Positions 1 to 6,667 of a stretch of 6,667 nucleotides of DNA are shown here, piece by piece (positions within the stretch are counted from its first letter, which is position 1; every line of letters begins with the position of its first letter). Source of the DNA: Selaginella moellendorffii (Eukaryota; Plantae; Lycopodiophyta); the NCBI RefSeq assembly GCF_000143415.4, contig NW_003314712.1:1-6667 (forward strand), written 5' to 3'. Under the pieces are notes generated by a model. It was not told where the DNA came from. It searched no databases and saw only the letters and a list, made by a program, of their open reading frames with translations. Position numbers and translations under genes: made by a program.

Positions 1-478
1 TGGGTGTTGTCACGCTTCTTCCAGTGAGCCTTGTCTGCCAGGTATGGCGTTCGTTTATTCTTGGAGATGGCTGCCAGATCAGGCGGAGGTGTTATTTCCC
101 CCTGTTGTTCCTTCATGGGGAATTAAGGAGGCTGGCGTGCTTCATCCCTATTAGTGGCACGCTCTACGATCCCGATGCTTTCTTTTTGCCGCCGTTCGTG
201 TTCGTTTCGCCATCCAGCATTACAAGAGGGCGAGCTCAAATGGTTGGGTGTTGTGGAGGTACTACACAGAAGGAAAGACGGTCTCTTTGGTGCTAAACAA
301 TCCCTTGGTACCATCCAGCTCAGTGACGCTACCACACTGCCCAGAAGTAAAGCATGATTGGATTGAACCTGAGAACTTCGCCATGCTTGCCGCGAAAGAC
401 GGCAGCAGCTTTTGCATATCGTTTGTCGACTTTGACATCTTTTATGCGTATTCTTATGCTGCTGGTGGTGAGAACGAG
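1..478 (+). pseudogene. F-box gene, frameshifted paralog of 5127-6206 (5' end outside the window, 3' end in the N gap)
   Basis: Frame starting at nt 3 gives GVVTLLPVSLVCQVWRSF...ELRRLACF...LYDPDAFFLPP...SSIT; after 2 extra nt at about 225-229 (ACA AGAGG GCG versus CCA GTC GCT in the intact copy) another frame gives ASSNGWVLWRYYT...NNPLVPSSSVTLPHC...DWIEPENFAMLAAKDGSSFCISFV. Manual alignment to the intact copy gives roughly 108/157 identical residues. The frameshift could be a sequencing error. Confidence 0.85.
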
Positions 479-1309
479 NNNNNNNNNNNNNNNNNNNNNN
501 NNNNNNNNNNNNNNNNNNNNNNNNNNNNNNNNNNNNNNNNNNNNNNNNNNNNNNNNNNNNNNNNNNNNNNNNNNNNNNNNNNNNNNNNNNNNNNNNNNNN
601 NNNNNNNNNNNNNNNNNNNNNNNNNNNNNNNNNNNNNNNNNNNNNNNNNNNNNNNNNNNNNNNNNNNNNNNNNNNNNNNNNNNNNNNNNNNNNNNNNNNN
701 NNNNNNNNNNNNNNNNNNNNNNNNNNNNNNNNNNNNNNNNNNNNNNNNNNNNNNNNNNNNNNNNNNNNNNNNNNNNNNNNNNNNNNNNNNNNNNNNNNNN
801 NNNNNNNNNNNNNNNNNNNNNNNNNNNNNNNNNNNNNNNNNNNNNNNNNNNNNNNNNNNNNNNNNNNNNNNNNNNNNNNNNNNNNNNNNNNNNNNNNNNN
901 NNNNNNNNNNNNNNNNNNNNNNNNNNNNNNNNNNNNNNNNNNNNNNNNNNNNNNNNNNNNNNNNNNNNNNNNNNNNNNNNNNNNNNNNNNNNNNNNNNNN
1001 NNNNNNNNNNNNNNNNNNNNNNNNNNNNNNNNNNNNNNNNNNNNNNNNNNNNNNNNNNNNNNNNNNNNNNNNNNNNNNNNNNNNNNNNNNNNNNNNNNNN
1101 NNNNNNNNNNNNNNNNNNNNNNNNNNNNNNNNNNNNNNNNNNNNNNNNNNNNNNNNNNNNNNNNNNNNNNNNNNNNNNNNNNNNNNNNNNNNNNNNNNNN
1201 NNNNNNNNNNNNNNNNNNNNNNNNNNNNNNNNNNNNNNNNNNNNNNNNNNNNNNNNNNNNNNNNNNNNNNNNNNNNNNNNNNNNNNNNNNNNNNNNNNNN
1301 NNNNNNNNN
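479..1309. other. Assembly gap (831 N)
   Basis: Run of N; long enough to hold the about 530 nt missing from the + strand F-box copy. Confidence 1.
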
Positions 1310-1950
1310 TCTAGCTGCCAAGAACAGAGATACTCTCTGTGAGAAGGCAAAAGGAACCCGAGGAGACCAAAACTATGAAGCACGTATCGAAAGAGAGCCG
1401 ATTGCCACAAAGTGTGTTCTTCGATCTTCGTGGCAACCATGACAGGGTTGGTGTCCCCAATCGCGAACTGGACTTCTTTTCTTGGTACAGCATCAGCGCA
1501 GATATGAATCGTGTCGGTCGATCCTGTTCAAGCGGGAACTGTCACGGTGCGTTAACTTGGATCATTGCTTGTGAAACTTACAGTGGAAAACTATTTCTTC
1601 TCTGATAGGTTCCTGGTGGCTGGACGTACTTGTTTCTTGGTTTTGATGATATCATGGCCATCGGGCTTCGCGTGGCCAACAAATCTGTTTGGCGACAGAC
1701 TCCCTGAAAATGGAGTCCCTGCTCGAAGGCTTTGAAAAGAAGCAGTCACGCAGTTCTTCCGCCAAGGTAGCGTTTGGACACTTTCCAATGTCTTTCACGG
1801 CCTCTTCAGAATCAGGGAGACGAGGCATACTTATCCACACTAAGTTTGCAAATCATGTATGGGCTTCGGGCGGAGCTCTAGCAGAAAGAACGAGTTTTGG
1901 GAGTGGGAAATCGAGGACTGGAGAGCTTTCACTTGATCGCATTCGAGCTG
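1310..1950 (+). pseudogene. Decayed calcineurin-like metallophosphoesterase fragment (At3g03305/TMEM62-like)
   Basis: Collinear family motifs in shifting frames: SVFFDLRGNHD (GNHD at 1432-1443), LDFFSWYSI, intron 1547-1608 (GTGCGT...ATAG), YLFLGFD..MAIGLR / PTNLFG (frameshift near 1670), KVAFGHFPMSF (GHFP 1776-1787), AYL/HTKF (GHLH motif damaged by deletion), EFWEWEIEDWR (1892-1924) followed by TGA. Family assignment is from my recall of the plant protein, not from a search. Confidence 0.85.
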
Positions 1951-3240
1951 TGTTCTCCAAAGGTGCCGATTACTGCTGTGAGCTGGTGTGGCGGCGGCTA
2001 AAGTCAGTTCCAGTTCCAGGTGATGTTGAATGTCTGTCTCTTTTTCTATAGTTTATTCATCTTTTCGTGGCATTTCTGAACAGCATCTATGTCTCAGATT
2101 GCGTCAGTCTTGATCGTCTTAAGGACATCGGTGGTGTACGAAGAGTCTCGGGATTATGCGGGACACAGGTGAGCTCTAAGTCGACGTCGGAAGTTTCTGT
2201 CTTATTTGATGTGTCGTGCAAAGACTTGGCAGAAACAGATCACCGACGTTGTGCAGTATATTGAAGAGAGGCTTGACGAGGTCTGGAAGAGGTAAGAGTT
2301 CCTTGAAATAAATAAGTAAAAACTTATCCTTTGGAACAAAGATTCAAGCCCAGGGATGTGCCGAAAAACAGTAAAATGAGGCTACAGGTTCGAATCAAGT
2401 AATGTTTAGTCGAGTTGAGAAGTGACAACGAGTAGCGAGGTGTTCGTCAGCTTGTCCAAGCTCTTGTAAGCGCCGTTTACTCCATTGTGGTGATTGTCGT
2501 CTAACTTGACAAGCTCCATTGGCAGGCAATTCATCAAGAAAACGAGTTTGAACGCTTTCTTGCGCTTCTGAGCGACCGGCAGGTTATGTCTTCTTCTTCT
2601 GCTACTTGTCGACCATACACAGGCGGGTCTAGCTACAGAGTTTGGAAGCGCAAGAGAACAAGACCAATGGCTTCAGATGGACGTTTCAACGTGACTTCTG
2701 CACAGGTAAACAACACTTTTTTTTTCTTTCTTACTTCGTTTACTCCCGCTTTAGATCGAAGAACCGGAGGAGGCAATCGATCTGGTGAGGTGGCTGAGGA
2801 ATTAACGAGACGAGCCCCAGAAAGTAAGCAGTCTCTAGAGCTGGTCCCAGTGCGTCTAACCACGTAATTCTTTCTGCCAGGAAACGTTTGAAGACAGAGG
2901 TCACCCTTAGCAAGCAAGTCAAGTTCGACAGTGTCAAGGCAATTACACTTTTGTTTTGCAGGATATTCGGCAAGATTGAACTCTGTCAGACGTTCCGGTA
3001 TGGTTTACGATTGTTTGATCTCTACGTACAATTTGCGTTTCCGGTGTTTGGCAGGACTATAATGGATCTAGATTGCATCATTCTTTTGAAGGTAAGCTCT
3101 TTTTTTTAAGTTTCGCAAACTTCCAGGTGGTATGCCCAAGTACGTGACAATCGGAAGAGGAGAGTGAGCGGCACAGGTAAGAGTTTGGTGGTTTGGTGTT
3201 TCCTCGGTTCGATTTTTTCCTTTGTGTCACTTGAAGTTTG
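1951..3240 (+). pseudogene. Unidentified intron-rich gene, probably degenerate in its 3' half
   Basis: Chain of short candidate introns: 2003-2083, 2169-2223, 2292-2341, 2388-2435, 2466-2513 (CTAAC branch site), 2583-2632/2638, 2706-2754, 2824-2880 (CTAAC), 2914-2961 (GC-AG), 2998-3054, 3092-3126/3140, 3177-3236. Exons 2084-2582 splice into an open frame (IYVSDCVSLDRLKDIGG...TWQKQITDVVQYIEERLDEVWKRFKP...RGVRQLVQALLHWQAIHQENEFERFLALLSDRQ); later exons carry stops. Several acceptors are weak AAG. No family recognised. Confidence 0.6.
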
Positions 3241-3263
3241 CACGAGCTTGGCGGCAAGGAGAG

Positions 3264-3351
3264 GCCGTGAAGATGAATGCACTGGAGAAAGGCATGGCTG
3301 TTCACTCTCAAGGATTGGATGCAAGCCGTGAAGATGAATGCATTGGAGAAA
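3264..3351 (+). repeat. Direct repeat, 27 bp x2, period 61 bp
   Basis: GCCGTGAAGATGAATGCA(C/T)TGGAGAAA at 3264-3290 and 3325-3351, one mismatch. Confidence 0.95.
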
Positions 3352-3439
3352 AGATGGCCGAGAACAAATTGCTGAGAACGAATCAAATTGCGTAGAATAG
3401 AACTTTGACAATGCGGCACCGACGACACACAAGATTCAC

Positions 3440-3718
3440 CTAGAAATCTACAACAAGCTCACGCAGAGCCTTTTCGGCATCCAGAACAGCACGCTCGAAC
3501 TTTTCTCCGATCTTCTGCAGTTTTGTTGCTTTGCGCTTCCCGATTTCCCCCATAGCACGAAGCCCCTGGTTGCCGTGGACAGCTTCGGTGATGCCCGCCT
3601 TGAATTCGTCCAGGTGGAAGCCAGTGAGCGTGTCCCCGATGGCGTCTTCAGTCACACGGGCGATTCGCTGGAGCTCTCCTTTGATCGCCAGAACATTGCG
3701 CATCGCCTCTGCCGCCAT
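3440..3718 (-). CDS. Small uncharacterised helical/coiled-coil-like protein X1 (92 aa, MAAEAMRNVLAIKGELQRIARVTEDAIG...KALRELVVDF)
   Basis: ATG at 3718 in good context (GGATGG) directly after a 5'-UTR intron; TATA box upstream; GC-rich coding-like sequence; amphipathic periodicity; N-terminal similarity to 4873-5121. The ORF-track start at 3790 lies in the intron. Confidence 0.75.
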   Translation of the reverse strand: MAAEAMRNVLAIKGELQRIARVTEDAIGDTLTGFHLDEFKAGITEAVHGNQGLRAMGEIGKRKATKLQKIGEKFERAVLDAEKALRELVVDF

Positions 3719-3719
3719 C

Positions 3720-3794
3720 CTGGAAAAGAAAGAGAAACGAGAGGGAGAGAGACGGAAGAGATGAGAGATGAGGGAGTAGAAGAGAAGCACTCAC
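3720..3794 (-). other. 5'-UTR intron of X1 (75 nt)
   Basis: Minus strand GTGAGT...long CT tract...TTTTCCAG, ending 1 nt before the ATG. Confidence 0.8.
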
Positions 3795-3853
3795 GTTAGA
3801 GAGCCGCGCAGACAAGAGCCGAGACGTTAGCGAGCCGCTGAAGAGCCGAGACG
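3793..3853 (+). repeat. Imperfect tandem duplication (about 27-31 bp unit) in the X1 leader exon
   Basis: ACGTTAG(A/C)GAGCCGC at 3793 and 3824; AAGAGCCGAGACG at 3814 and 3841. Confidence 0.8.
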
Positions 3854-3866
3854 CCCCAGCTGGCCA

Positions 3867-3953
3867 TTTTATAGAGCAGGATATTGACTTTTGACTGAGG
3901 ACTGCTTGGACTTTGACGTGATCCCGTAAAGATTTCAGTGACTTTGACTTTGA
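3867..3953 (-). promoter_or_regulatory. X1 core promoter: TATA box plus W-box cluster
   Basis: TATAAAA on the minus strand at 3867-3873; TTGACT at 3884, 3891 and 3944; TGACT at 3939; TTGACGT (TGACG, TGA/as-1-like half site) at 3913. Confidence 0.7.
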
Positions 3954-4265
3954 TACGGGCAAAGAAAAACTTAATACAGGGCATTTTTTTTTGTTACTGG
4001 CAGATCAGGAAATCCAAATACAAACTATCAGGAAAAGTATTTAAAATGTACATAATTGATGATTAAGAAAGATTAAGCTAAGGCATTCCTCAAGTAAGCT
4101 TGAAGTAAGTAAACTATATATATATTTGATCCATGTGACGAGCAACACTCTTGTGAGCAAGACGTCTCAAGAAGAACTAGGCAGTGCCGTAGTTCCCAAG
4201 TAATTGTATGAAATCCTCAAAGGGCTCAAAAGCAACCATGGCAAAGAGCAGTTAATTTCAGTATT

Positions 4266-4360
4266 TGTTAGGCACTAGGTCAGGATAATAGGATAAAGAA
4301 AAAGCCCTGTAATACTTTTTTAGCTAGCTGGTTTAGGGTGTAAGGGATAGGATCCTAACA
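4266..4360 (+). repeat. 5' LTR of the TRIM (95 bp)
   Basis: Perfect 7-bp terminal inverted repeat TGTTAGG...CCTAACA; matches 4451-4535 at 42/48 nt (5' part) and 21/24 nt (3' part). Confidence 0.92.
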
Positions 4361-4450
4361 TTGGTATCAAAACTTAATTCGATTCTTGTAATTGACTTAA
4401 ATATAACCTAAATATAATTGCGGATGATCATTCCCTGACAAAGGGAGGAT

Positions 4451-4535
4451 TGTTAGGCACTAAGTCAGGATAATAAAATAAAGAAAGGGCCCTGCAATTA
4501 AGTGATCACCCGGTGTAAGGGATAGAATTTTAACA
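4451..4535 (+). repeat. 3' LTR of the TRIM (85 bp)
   Basis: TGTTAGG...TTTAACA, preceded by the polypurine tract; direct repeat of 4266-4360 with a different middle segment. Confidence 0.92.
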
Positions 4536-4610
4536 ATATTCTTTCTCTATTAAACACATGATTAGTGGACGTCATGAAGAGTGCCTTAAGCTAAGAATCT
4601 ATTCATTAAG

Positions 4611-4758
4611 GGTCAACACTCAAACATTCTCTAACAGAATTCAAAGTCTAAGATTTGTATGATGCTTTAGCTGTCAAAAATCCAAAAGTCAAAGATATTC
4701 AAAGATCTAAGTCAAAGAGATTCAAAGGTCAATGGCCAACCTCTTCTGCTTTATAAAA
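4611..4758 (+). promoter_or_regulatory. X2 core promoter: W-box cluster plus TATA box
   Basis: RGTCAA (reverse-complement W-box) at 4611, 4687, 4710 and 4727; TGTCAA at 4672; five TCAAAG copies in 4641-4727; TATAAAA at 4752-4758. Confidence 0.7.
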
Positions 4759-4799
4759 TCCGCTACAGCTCGCTGTTTCTTCTCTCTTCTCTCCACAAG

Positions 4800-4867
4800 G
4801 TGAGTGTGTTTTTCTTTTTCTAGATTCTCCTTCTCGTCTCTCTCTCTGTTTCGTTTTTTCTCTGCAG
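4800..4867 (+). other. 5'-UTR intron of X2 (68 nt)
   Basis: AAG|GTGAGT...CT-rich...CTGCAG|TGAGGATGG; ends 5 nt before the ATG at 4873. Confidence 0.8.
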
Positions 4868-4872
4868 TGAGG

Positions 4873-5121
4873 ATGGCACACAACATTCCAATGGGCGGAG
4901 CGATCCAGCTCAAGCGAGACTTGGAGGAACTTCTCCACGGCACTGAGGCCGCTTTCATCCCCACCCTCCGCCAGCTCGACCTCGCCGCCAACACGGGTGG
5001 AGGCCCGCTATGCCGTGACCCGTCGAGCTCCATTTTATCGAGCACGAAAACTCGCTTCTCCTGCACCCACGCTCTCTCACAAAAAACAACCCTAAACTCT
5101 TTCTCTGAACACAAACTATAG
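4873..5121 (+). CDS. Small uncharacterised protein X2 (82 aa), distant paralog of X1; possibly 3'-truncated
   Basis: MAHNIPMGGAIQLKRDLEELLHGTEAAFIPTLRQLDL aligns without gaps to X1 MRNVLAIKGELQRIARVTEDAIGDTLTGFHL (9/31 identical, hydrophobic pattern kept). Same gene architecture as X1. Similarity stops near 4985 and the rest looks like read-through. Confidence 0.6.
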   Translation: MAHNIPMGGAIQLKRDLEELLHGTEAAFIPTLRQLDLAANTGGGPLCRDPSSSILSSTKTRFSCTHALSQKTTLNSFSEHKL

Positions 5122-5126
5122 CTTCT

Positions 5127-6206
5127 TTAGATTTTTGGATTTGGAACAAATGCTAATGTGTGTGACATGGGCCAATCTTTCGGCCATGGCTGAGCTTCAT
5201 CGGTTTCTTTCATTAGAGGGCACCATTTAAACTTGACTGGCGTCACAAGCTTTTCAACCTTCCACACTCCAGTCTTCAAATCAAGCACCGTTTGATTCCA
5301 TGGAACATGGTGGAACTCATTATCCGAGCAAATAAACACTTTCTTTCTCCTATACGGGACAATTTCAGCACAAACCCATTTTTCCTCCTCTTTTACAAAC
5401 CCGTCAACACGTTTTACCAGTGATAAACGCATGGGCCCGTTCATGAATCTCACGGTGACGAGCTCTCCTCTCAACGAGACTAATCCAAAAGCACCATACT
5501 TGTAGTCCTCCAAGCTTTCCAACTTCCCCACAAGCACACATTCATCATTTTGAGGCTTGTAAACCCAGTGGCCGCTTTCCCCTAAGATGTGGCAGTGCTC
5601 AAAATCAGTCCATGCAACCCTATGTCCCCTGTATCTTCCATTCCCGACCGTTCTCCACTCGTTCTGATCATGATCATGACCACCCGCAGTATAAGCATAC
5701 GCATAAATGGTACCAAAGACGACAAAAGATATGCAAAAGCTGCTGCCGTCCTTGGCCGCAAGCACGGCGAAGTTCTCAGGTTCAATCCAATCCTCCGTCA
5801 AAACGTCATGGCAGTGTGGCAGCGTCACTGAGCTGGATCGTACCAAGGGATTGTTTATCACCAAAGAGACCATATCTTCCTTTGTGTAATACCTCCACAA
5901 CACCCAACCATTTGAGCTAGCGACTGGAATGCTTGATAGTGAAACTGATACCTCAGGTGGCAGAAAAAAGGTGTTGGGATCGTAGAGCTGGCCACTTTTA
6001 GGGTTGAAGCACGCCAGCCTTCGAAGTTCCACTTGAAGAAACAAGAGTGGAGAATTACACCTTTGCTTGATATCGTTGCCCTCTCTACGAACAAACCCAT
6101 TCCATTCCCTGCAAACAAGGGATGCTCGAACCAGTGATTCAACATCCAGCAGCTTGGACAAGATATAAAACCAAAGAACGTCTGGTAATCCCGGGTGTGG
6201 TGGCAT
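5127..6206 (-). CDS. F-box protein (359 aa) with a probable C-terminal beta-propeller-type substrate-binding domain; intronless CDS
   Basis: N-terminal F-box LPDVLWFYILSKLLDVESLVRASLVCREWN; plant F-box-associated signatures ASSNGWVL and INNPLVRSSSVTLP; uninterrupted ORF; paralog at 1-478. Confidence 0.93.
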   Translation of the reverse strand: MPPHPGLPDVLWFYILSKLLDVESLVRASLVCREWNGFVRREGNDIKQRCNSPLLFLQVELRRLACFNPKSGQLYDPNTFFLPPEVSVSLSSIPVASSNGWVLWRYYTKEDMVSLVINNPLVRSSSVTLPHCHDVLTEDWIEPENFAVLAAKDGSSFCISFVVFGTIYAYAYTAGGHDHDQNEWRTVGNGRYRGHRVAWTDFEHCHILGESGHWVYKPQNDECVLVGKLESLEDYKYGAFGLVSLRGELVTVRFMNGPMRLSLVKRVDGFVKEEEKWVCAEIVPYRRKKVFICSDNEFHHVPWNQTVLDLKTGVWKVEKLVTPVKFKWCPLMKETDEAQPWPKDWPMSHTLAFVPNPKI

Positions 6207-6291: not shown

Positions 6292-6469
6292 TGTTTGCCT
6301 TTAATTTAATAATGTTTTTGATTTTTCATGGCATTCGCACAAATGTAAGAAAAAGAGAGAGATGAAAATTCTTCCAGAATTGACTGTATAGACATAAGAA
6401 ATCCCGAGACTTGGGTAGGTAGGGTAGGGCGACACTCAAAATCGAGGGCGACAGTAGAATGACTTTGTG

Positions 6470-6618
6470 ATGCGGCTTCCCAGGATCACTGCTCCGCAGG
6501 CCACAATCAGGGCGTGGCTCGGCTCTCATGGTGTGTCGCCCGCCATGGATTCCTCCGATTCCTTCTCCGCAGCCTGGAGGCCGTGCTTGCTCGCCAGGGA
6601 GGGCTTCGGCAACTCAAG
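6470..6618 (+). other. Possible exon of a + strand gene continuing beyond the window
   Basis: GC-rich segment open from ATG 6470 (MRLPRITAPQ...), ending at AAG|GTGAAA (6619) and followed by T-rich intron-like sequence. Reading frame and product are uncertain. Confidence 0.3.
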
Positions 6619-6667
6619 GTGAAATTTTCTTCCATTTTGCACGAGTTTTTAGTTGCTTAGTATTTTT

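Follow-up and report, generated by a model that had tools for sequence, protein, structure and literature searches.

Does a mirror-image arrangement of two small gene families reflect a functional module that has been copied as a unit, or neighbouring genes that happened to be duplicated together? The question is raised by a 6,667-nt stretch of the genome of the lycophyte Selaginella moellendorffii (hereafter the window; all positions, up to 6,206 and beyond, are those of the whole stretch), in which two F-box genes, FL on the left and FR on the right, point inward from the ends and two short genes, X1 and X2, point outward from a shared centre. An earlier note on this DNA had described this layout and suggested that an X gene and an F-box gene form a repeated unit, for example a toxin-antidote or effector-regulator pair. 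Within the window the gene anatomy bears out the description: from left to right, FL (+) is followed by an assembly gap, gene debris (+), X1 (-), an AT-rich spacer, X2 (+) and FR (-), with X1 and X2 head to head (Table 1). The spacings given by the note also stand, as only 5 nt lie between X2 and FR (the X2 stop ends at 5121 and the FR open reading frame (ORF) begins at 5127), and X1 is parted from FL by the gap plus ~1.8 kb of broken + strand frames. We conclude that the locus probably consists of two neighbouring orphan families that have been copied locally several times in a process of birth and death. The linkage between them would be a matter of co-duplication of neighbours, rather than of obligatory partnership.

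The mirror symmetry is confined to the window. A cluster look-up identified a third X copy, X3, as the ~100 N-terminal residues of the gene model SELMODRAFT_422926 (P0006, 742 aa), which carries two F-boxes and fuses three genes: X3, a third F-box gene (F3) and FL. The wider locus therefore opens with X3, F3 and FL, all running co-directionally on the + strand, and continues across the gap with the debris (+), the divergent pair X1 (-) and X2 (+), and FR (-). The window is best read as the right-hand two thirds of a gene cluster restricted to S. moellendorffii. Three X and three to four F copies are found together in this single locus of ~9-10 kb, and no copy of either family was found elsewhere in the databases searched.

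X3 also provides the evidence that X is a gene family. X1 aligns to X3 (P0006 residues 10-96) at 43% identity over 87 aa, with a pairwise expect value (E) of 2e-19 and only two in-frame indels, and two blocks are conserved between the copies, of which one has AIGDT at its end and the other, at the C-terminus, takes the form KLxKxGExFERAV. On the strength of this alignment X is a genuine protein family, and we infer that it has been under coding constraint. The paralogy of X1 and X2, proposed earlier from ~29% identity over 31 aa, is not significant for the pair taken alone, which showed 31% identity over 26 aa at E 0.036 in a permissive pairwise run and no match by default BLASTP; it becomes credible because the third copy matches both. 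Searching X3 against the six-frame translation of the window (tblastn) recovered X1 at E 1.7e-16 and codons 4-36 of X2 at E 0.01 (36% over 33 aa), followed by noise at E 1.3, and when 218 six-frame fragments were scored with a hidden Markov model (HMM) of X1 and X3, the X2 ORF came out at E 0.026, the next fragment having an E of 0.51.

The resemblance of X2 to the family ends at about codon 36. The C-terminal two thirds of the X family were not found in any frame downstream of the X2 start region (tblastn, X3 query), and the remainder of the X2 frame is an unrelated serine/threonine-rich sequence lying in the 3' flank of FR. Guanine-plus-cytosine (GC) content at the first, second and third codon positions is 0.70/0.37/0.63 in X1 and 0.69/0.36/0.75 in X2 codons 1-36, and shifts to 0.43/0.59/0.59 in X2 codons 37-82. 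Because of this shift and the missing C-terminal sequence, X2 is interpreted as a truncated or decayed copy, which seems to retain its promoter, predicted intron and first ~36 codons and to have lost the rest. X1 looks functional in this haplotype. A possible fourth X remnant upstream of FR, suggested by matches at 6532-6597 (-, E 3.7) and 6580-6627 (+, E 1.5), was dropped, as the two matches overlap on opposite strands and were not recovered by the HMM.

Neither family has relatives outside the locus in the databases searched. An HMMER search of 1.84 billion representative sequences returned a single relative of X1, the model SELMODRAFT_422925 (P0003), which is itself built partly from the X1 allele; two non-Selaginella matches were to repeat proteins and were discarded as noise. 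Word searches for X1 and X2 in 5.8 billion clusters, including transcript-derived assemblies, were blank, X1, X2 and X3 had no match in Pfam, and no relatives of X were found by a PDB profile search or in the ESM Atlas. AlphaFold2 (AF2) predicts X1 to be an antiparallel helical hairpin or bundle, with helices at residues 2-33, 36-49 and 51-91 and a mean predicted local distance difference test (pLDDT) score of 69. Foldseek searches with this model returned nothing at E<=1e-3, and VIA-align returned only generic antiparallel coiled-coil hairpins at Z<=10.1, which is in the range of helical noise given that ~13 is stated to be needed for helical models. Across the Pfam, PDB profile, Atlas, HMMER and fold searches, no similarity of X to a known toxin, RNase or effector was found. 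The 359-aa FR ORF is identical to one database protein, and its sole further match is the F3 model SELMODRAFT_428972 (P0002, 276 aa) on the same 565,628-nt scaffold; the F-box family as a whole matches only S. moellendorffii proteins, namely P0001, P0002 and the other members of their clusters.

F-box proteins are substrate adaptors of the Skp1-cullin-F-box (SCF) type. Membership is defined here by the N-terminal motif of Pfam PF00646 or PF12937, and FR carries an F-box at residues 7-43, matching the Pfam F-box-like profile over residues 7-40 (E 2.7e-8; 33.9 bits, cut-off 24.3) and the Pfam F-box profile at E 3e-5. Its C-terminal region has no Pfam domain at E<=1, domains of the kelch, LRR, FBA and DUF295 type having been looked for, and shows only a beta-hairpin pattern in an AF2 model built from four sequences (pLDDT 32). 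FR is intact and looks functional in this haplotype. A borderline match to Pfam DUF3703 (E 7e-5; 23.1 bits, cut-off 22.3), which covers the RIAWTDFEHCHILG stretch conserved in the F-box proteins at P0006 residues 275-308 and the equivalent residues of the second F-box unit, was taken as spurious; it is apparently the sum of two weak stretches and is absent from the single-copy FR.

At the protein level FL and FR are 60% identical over 72 aa and 77% over 82 aa, or ~69% overall as previously estimated, and F3, FL and FR are mutually 75-78% identical. Both F3 models, P0006 and P0002, lack the last ~85 residues present in FR and FL, and F3 may be truncated or mis-modelled. FL residues equivalent to 22-93 are encoded in frame 3 (nt 3-227) and those equivalent to 96-178 in frame 2 (nt 230-478); FL has 5 nt at ~225-229 where FR has 3 nt, and this surplus of 2 nt accounts for the frameshift. 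Substitutions in the 5' part of FL are spread evenly across codon positions, and on both grounds FL appears to be decaying. The earlier observation that one arm combines an intact X with a broken F-box gene, and the other an intact F-box gene with a truncated X, thus agrees with the FL frameshift and with the absence of C-terminal X sequence from X2.

The relative ages of the copies indicate that the mirror image did not arise in one step. FL and FR form an inverted repeat with nucleotide identities of 71% (1-224/5925-6148), 88% (230-348/5803-5921) and 89% (356-469/5679-5792), and their synonymous divergence (dS) amounts to 0.6-0.68 in the 5' part (nt 3-227) and to 0.27 in the 3' part (nt 230-478), with a ratio of nonsynonymous to synonymous divergence (dN/dS, omega) of ~0.45-0.5. 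Between the X arms, relaxed blastn aligned only 157 nt around the predicted intron and ATG, at 64% identity (E 5e-4), and the 30 homologous codons of X1 and X2 have a dS of 0.9-1.3 and a dN of ~0.75, giving a dN/dS near 1; X copies are 31-43% identical. This discordance rules out a single inverted (palindromic) duplication, as the earlier note had surmised, and since X1/X2 dS exceeds that of the F-box genes, the X/F pairs were not generated by the same duplication unless the F-box genes have undergone gene conversion. The difference may reflect a greater age of the X copies or, alternatively, homogenisation of the F-box genes by conversion. The position of X relative to F also varies, X3 and F3 being co-directional, X2 and FR convergent, and X1 without an adjacent F. 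The proposed repeated unit therefore survives as repeated co-location, in that a third X lies directly upstream of a third F-box gene in SELMODRAFT_422926, and is not supported as a fixed unit, because orientation and ages differ. The database searches leave both families confined to this locus, with neither orientation nor spacing conserved. Because all copies reside in one locus, their linkage is a single evolutionary observation and not three independent ones.

Comparison with a second scaffold (1,266,795 nt) lends indirect support to the order of the genes in the window. SELMODRAFT_422926, 422925 and 445617 on this scaffold have the consecutive UniProt accessions D8SK01, D8SK00 and D8SJZ9 and look like neighbours; they represent X3-F3-FL, debris-X1 and FR, respectively. 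SELMODRAFT_422926 and 422925 align with the + strand of the window and 445617 with its - strand, which matches the order and orientation seen here and speaks against the concern raised earlier, that the left contig might be misjoined or misoriented across the gap. The S. moellendorffii assembly holds both haplotypes (PMC3095285), and we infer that the second scaffold is the allelic haplotype. Protein identities between the scaffolds are uneven: 93.6% for FR, whose allele SELMODRAFT_445617 is likewise 359 aa long and differs at 23 of 359 residues, 98.1% for F3, and for FL 100% over nt 230-478 (P0006 residues 481-563) and 65% over nt 3-227 (P0006 residues 407-478), so that FL itself appears to be a mosaic. 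The switch in FL from 65% to 100% identity with the presumed allele falls at ~nt 228, right at the frameshift, and may mark the site of a recombination or conversion event or else a chimera at the contig end.

The FL allele is intact and full length in P0006. In the window the FL frame ends at the gap at about residue 178 of 359, and no F-box sequence was found to the right of the gap, where the first readable bases already belong to the + strand debris. If the copy in the window is also full length, the missing ~181 codons (~546 nt) would have to lie within the 831 N, a length that is nominal and an estimate, and they would fit there. At the X1/X2 pair the two scaffolds differ in another way. 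P0003 has exons mapping to 1710-3091, within the debris, and its last two exons map to opposite strands of the window, at 3518-3565 (+) and 3721-3599 (-), which implies an inversion or conversion difference between the scaffolds at this pair. The last 41 residues of P0003 correspond to X1 residues 1-40 at 93% identity, on the strand opposite to its other exons. On the second scaffold, either the 5' half of X1 is inverted or the copy at the X2 position has an X1-like start. P0003 is an ab initio model, and SELMODRAFT_422925 looks like a chimera of pseudogene scraps and part of X1.

The promoters of the two X genes share a distinctive organisation. Both genes have a TATAAAAT box and four W-box cores (TTGAC), at 3884, 3891, 3913 and 3944 for X1 and at 4673, 4688, 4711 and 4728 for X2, all antisense to the gene concerned. 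In each case all four cores lie no more than 100 nt upstream of the TATA box, a number reached in 0 of 5000 local-composition shuffles, and the two patches are the only 100-nt windows of the whole sequence with at least three cores. As TTGACY occurs 11 times in the window against 8.3 expected and is not enriched, the signal is one of local clustering. The predicted 5' untranslated region (UTR) introns end 1 nt (X1) and 5 nt (X2) before the ATG, and the X1 acceptor is apparently also used by model P0003. W-boxes are the WRKY binding sites of defence genes in seed plants, and the layout suggests WRKY-driven induction of X under stress or in defence, so that X may be under WRKY control. The resemblance to WRKY-controlled seed-plant defence genes lies in the crowding of TTGAC cores close to the TATA box, at 100 nt or less; X differs from them in that its product is an orphan.

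Local co-duplication combined with decay explains every observation made here. Under this scenario, family F would comprise intronless F-box genes for SCF-type adaptors with an unclassified, beta-rich C-terminal region, and family X genes of ~92-100 codons, for a putatively cytosolic antiparallel helical hairpin, with a TATA promoter dense in W-box cores and, by prediction, a short intron in the 5'UTR. The mirror image would be a composite of events of different ages, which would have left FL frameshifted and mosaic, X2 partial, and a candidate phosphoesterase-like pseudogene between FL and X1. Such a history is consistent with previous work in which lineage-specific plant F-box genes were found to arise by tandem or segmental duplication, to evolve under relaxed selection and to become pseudogenes frequently (PMC3030570). 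The present cluster resembles those attributed to genomic drift (Hua et al. 2011, PMC3030570) in being species-restricted and locally duplicated, with an omega of ~0.45-0.5, a frameshifted copy and no recognisable conserved C-terminal domain in the F family. It differs in that a second orphan family was amplified alongside, and in that the C-terminal region matches no Pfam F-box-associated domain.

Several observations weigh against a history of co-duplication and decay alone. The joint occurrence of the two families, nowhere else in searchable data, is more than casual neighbourhood predicts, and the two scaffolds are unusually diverged (FR at 93.6%, FL broken here and intact there, X1 apparently arranged differently there); divergence on this scale is likewise typical of loci engaged in conflict or immunity. 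Ordinary allele pairs of the assembly differ by 7-9 bp per complementary DNA (cDNA; PMC3095285). The divergence between the scaffolds would also fit a functionally coupled module, in which the F-box protein recognises the linked X as a substrate or antidote target and the two were duplicated as a unit, an explanation that we regard as unlikely. X3 lies directly upstream of F3 and X2 abuts FR, both families are restricted to the locus, the arms are in reciprocal states (in one, X1 is intact and FL broken; in the other, FR is intact and X2 truncated), and linked F-box/substrate modules have precedents (bioRxiv 10.1101/2024.09.16.613340; PMC10657391). Against this, X-to-F orientation and spacing are not conserved, the X and F duplications are of discordant age, X is unlike any known toxin or enzyme and yields only helical hairpins at noise level, the F-box omega gives no sign of positive selection, and the linkage counts only once. 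The more specific version, a young Selaginella-specific F-box/substrate module, inducible in defence through W-boxes, differently broken on the two haplotypes and acting as a toxin-antidote or effector-regulator pair, is more doubtful still; if true, it would be the first F-box-based linked module of its kind in a non-seed plant.

Two further explanations would remove the X genes or the mirror image altogether. That the X ORFs are not functional, but are remnants in decay or frames that were never expressed and lie by chance in duplicated intergenic DNA, is quite improbable: X1 and X2 are indeed absent as stand-alone proteins from the 5.8 billion clusters, the annotation holds pieces of X only in chimeric models, X1/X2 dN/dS is near 1 and X2 is clearly truncated, yet the frames of X1 and X3 have stayed open over 92-100 codons although the two proteins are only 43% identical, their alignment shows conserved blocks and indels that keep the frame, X1 has a coding-type GC periodicity, and X1 and X2 each have a TATA box, a W-box cluster and a predicted 5'UTR intron. 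It is very improbable indeed that the mirror image is an assembly artefact caused by misjoining or misorientation of the 478-nt left contig. In its favour are the shortness of that contig, the odd contrast between its first 227 nt, whose protein is only 65% identical to that of the allele, and its last 249 nt, where the protein is identical, and a gap length that is only an estimate, but the consecutive models for X3-F3-FL, debris-X1 and FR on the second scaffold have the same order and orientation as in the window. Co-duplication of two neighbouring families remains the preferred reading.

In the nematode Caenorhabditis tropicalis, F-box-plus-substrate modules have been duplicated into toxin-antidote elements, klmt-1/kss-1 and kss/fars-3 (bioRxiv 10.1101/2024.09.16.613340). 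The likeness would lie in an F-box gene tightly linked to a second gene, local repetition of the two, and presumed haplotypes that are strongly diverged at the protein level; the differences are that X is a 92-aa orphan, predicted to form a helical hairpin, and not a copy of an essential enzyme, and that the orientation of the pair is not conserved. The rice locus qHMS1 encodes the toxin HPT, a DEAD-like helicase, and the 361-aa F-box antidote HPA, between which direct binding was not detected (PMC10657391). It too is a plant locus with an N-terminal F-box protein of ~360 aa beside a linked partner gene, and X is of another fold and size than HPT. S-RNase/S-locus F-box (SLF) loci similarly cluster several F-box paralogs with a non-F-box gene in a polymorphic region. 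This comparison was rejected, as X is not an RNase T2: X1, X2 and X3 have no Pfam match and X1 is predicted to be all-helical. Selaginella, moreover, reproduces by spores and has no pollen-pistil recognition.

Should the two families be no more than neighbours, the locus is a tidy example of orphan-gene birth and death in a lycophyte, and its analysis corrects three gene models, the chimeric SELMODRAFT_422925 and SELMODRAFT_422926 and the truncated SELMODRAFT_428972. Should they instead be partners, the route from a linked F-box gene and substrate to a duplicated, interdependent pair, recently worked out in nematodes and suspected in rice, would also have been at work in an early-diverging vascular plant, and in a compact, testable system made up of a protein of 92 aa and an intronless F-box gene encoding 359 aa.

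Table 1 Coordinates of the genes, promoters and other features in the 6,667-nt window
Feature	Position	Strand	Remarks
FL, left F-box paralog	1..478	+	Cut by window start and by gap; 2-nt surplus at ~225-229
Assembly gap (N)	479..1309	.	Nominal 831 N
Gene debris, looks metallophosphoesterase-like	1310..3110	+	Three-frame translation; stops and frameshifts
X1, 92-codon ORF plus stop	3440..3718	-	Codons 3443-3718, stop 3440-3442; homology to X3
Predicted X1 5'UTR intron, 75 nt	3720..3794	-	GTGAGTG...CAG
X1 promoter	3866..3948	-	TATAAAAT at 3866-3873; four W-box cores
AT-rich spacer between X promoters	3975..4650	.	Holds ~185-nt tandem duplication
X2 promoter	4673..4759	+	Four W-box cores; TATAAAAT at 4752-4759
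Predicted X2 5'UTR intron, 68 nt	4800..4867	+	GTGAGTG...CAG
X2, 82-codon ORF	4873..5121	+	X-like only in codons ~4-36 (4882-4980)
FR, right F-box gene	5127..6206	-	Intact, intronless, 359 aa

The ~1.8 kb of debris between the gap and X1 is broken up by frameshifts and stops and contains a GNHD motif near 1420-1431. In the Atlas, the three best-scoring clusters that bear a name belong to PF00149 (Metallophos), at scores of only 0.77-0.79, and a Pfam search of the ORF pieces was negative; as a lead, the debris may be a pseudogene of calcineurin-type metallophosphoesterase-like origin. An Rfam scan of the window found nothing, and no paper was retrieved from the literature for the locus tags or the UniProt accessions. 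The ~185-nt tandem duplication in the spacer (4265-4360 and 4450-4535, segments 88% identical) could be either a short repeat or a piece of a transposon. Just 3' of the X1 stop, in the putative 3' region, there is a 27-nt direct repeat (3264-3290 and 3325-3351, 96% identical, 61 nt apart). Near the right end, an ORF in 6467-6625 (+), with an ATG near 6545 and a donor-like GT site (CAAG/GTGAAA) at ~6619, is cut by the end of the window and may represent exon 1 of an additional gene, divergent from FR.

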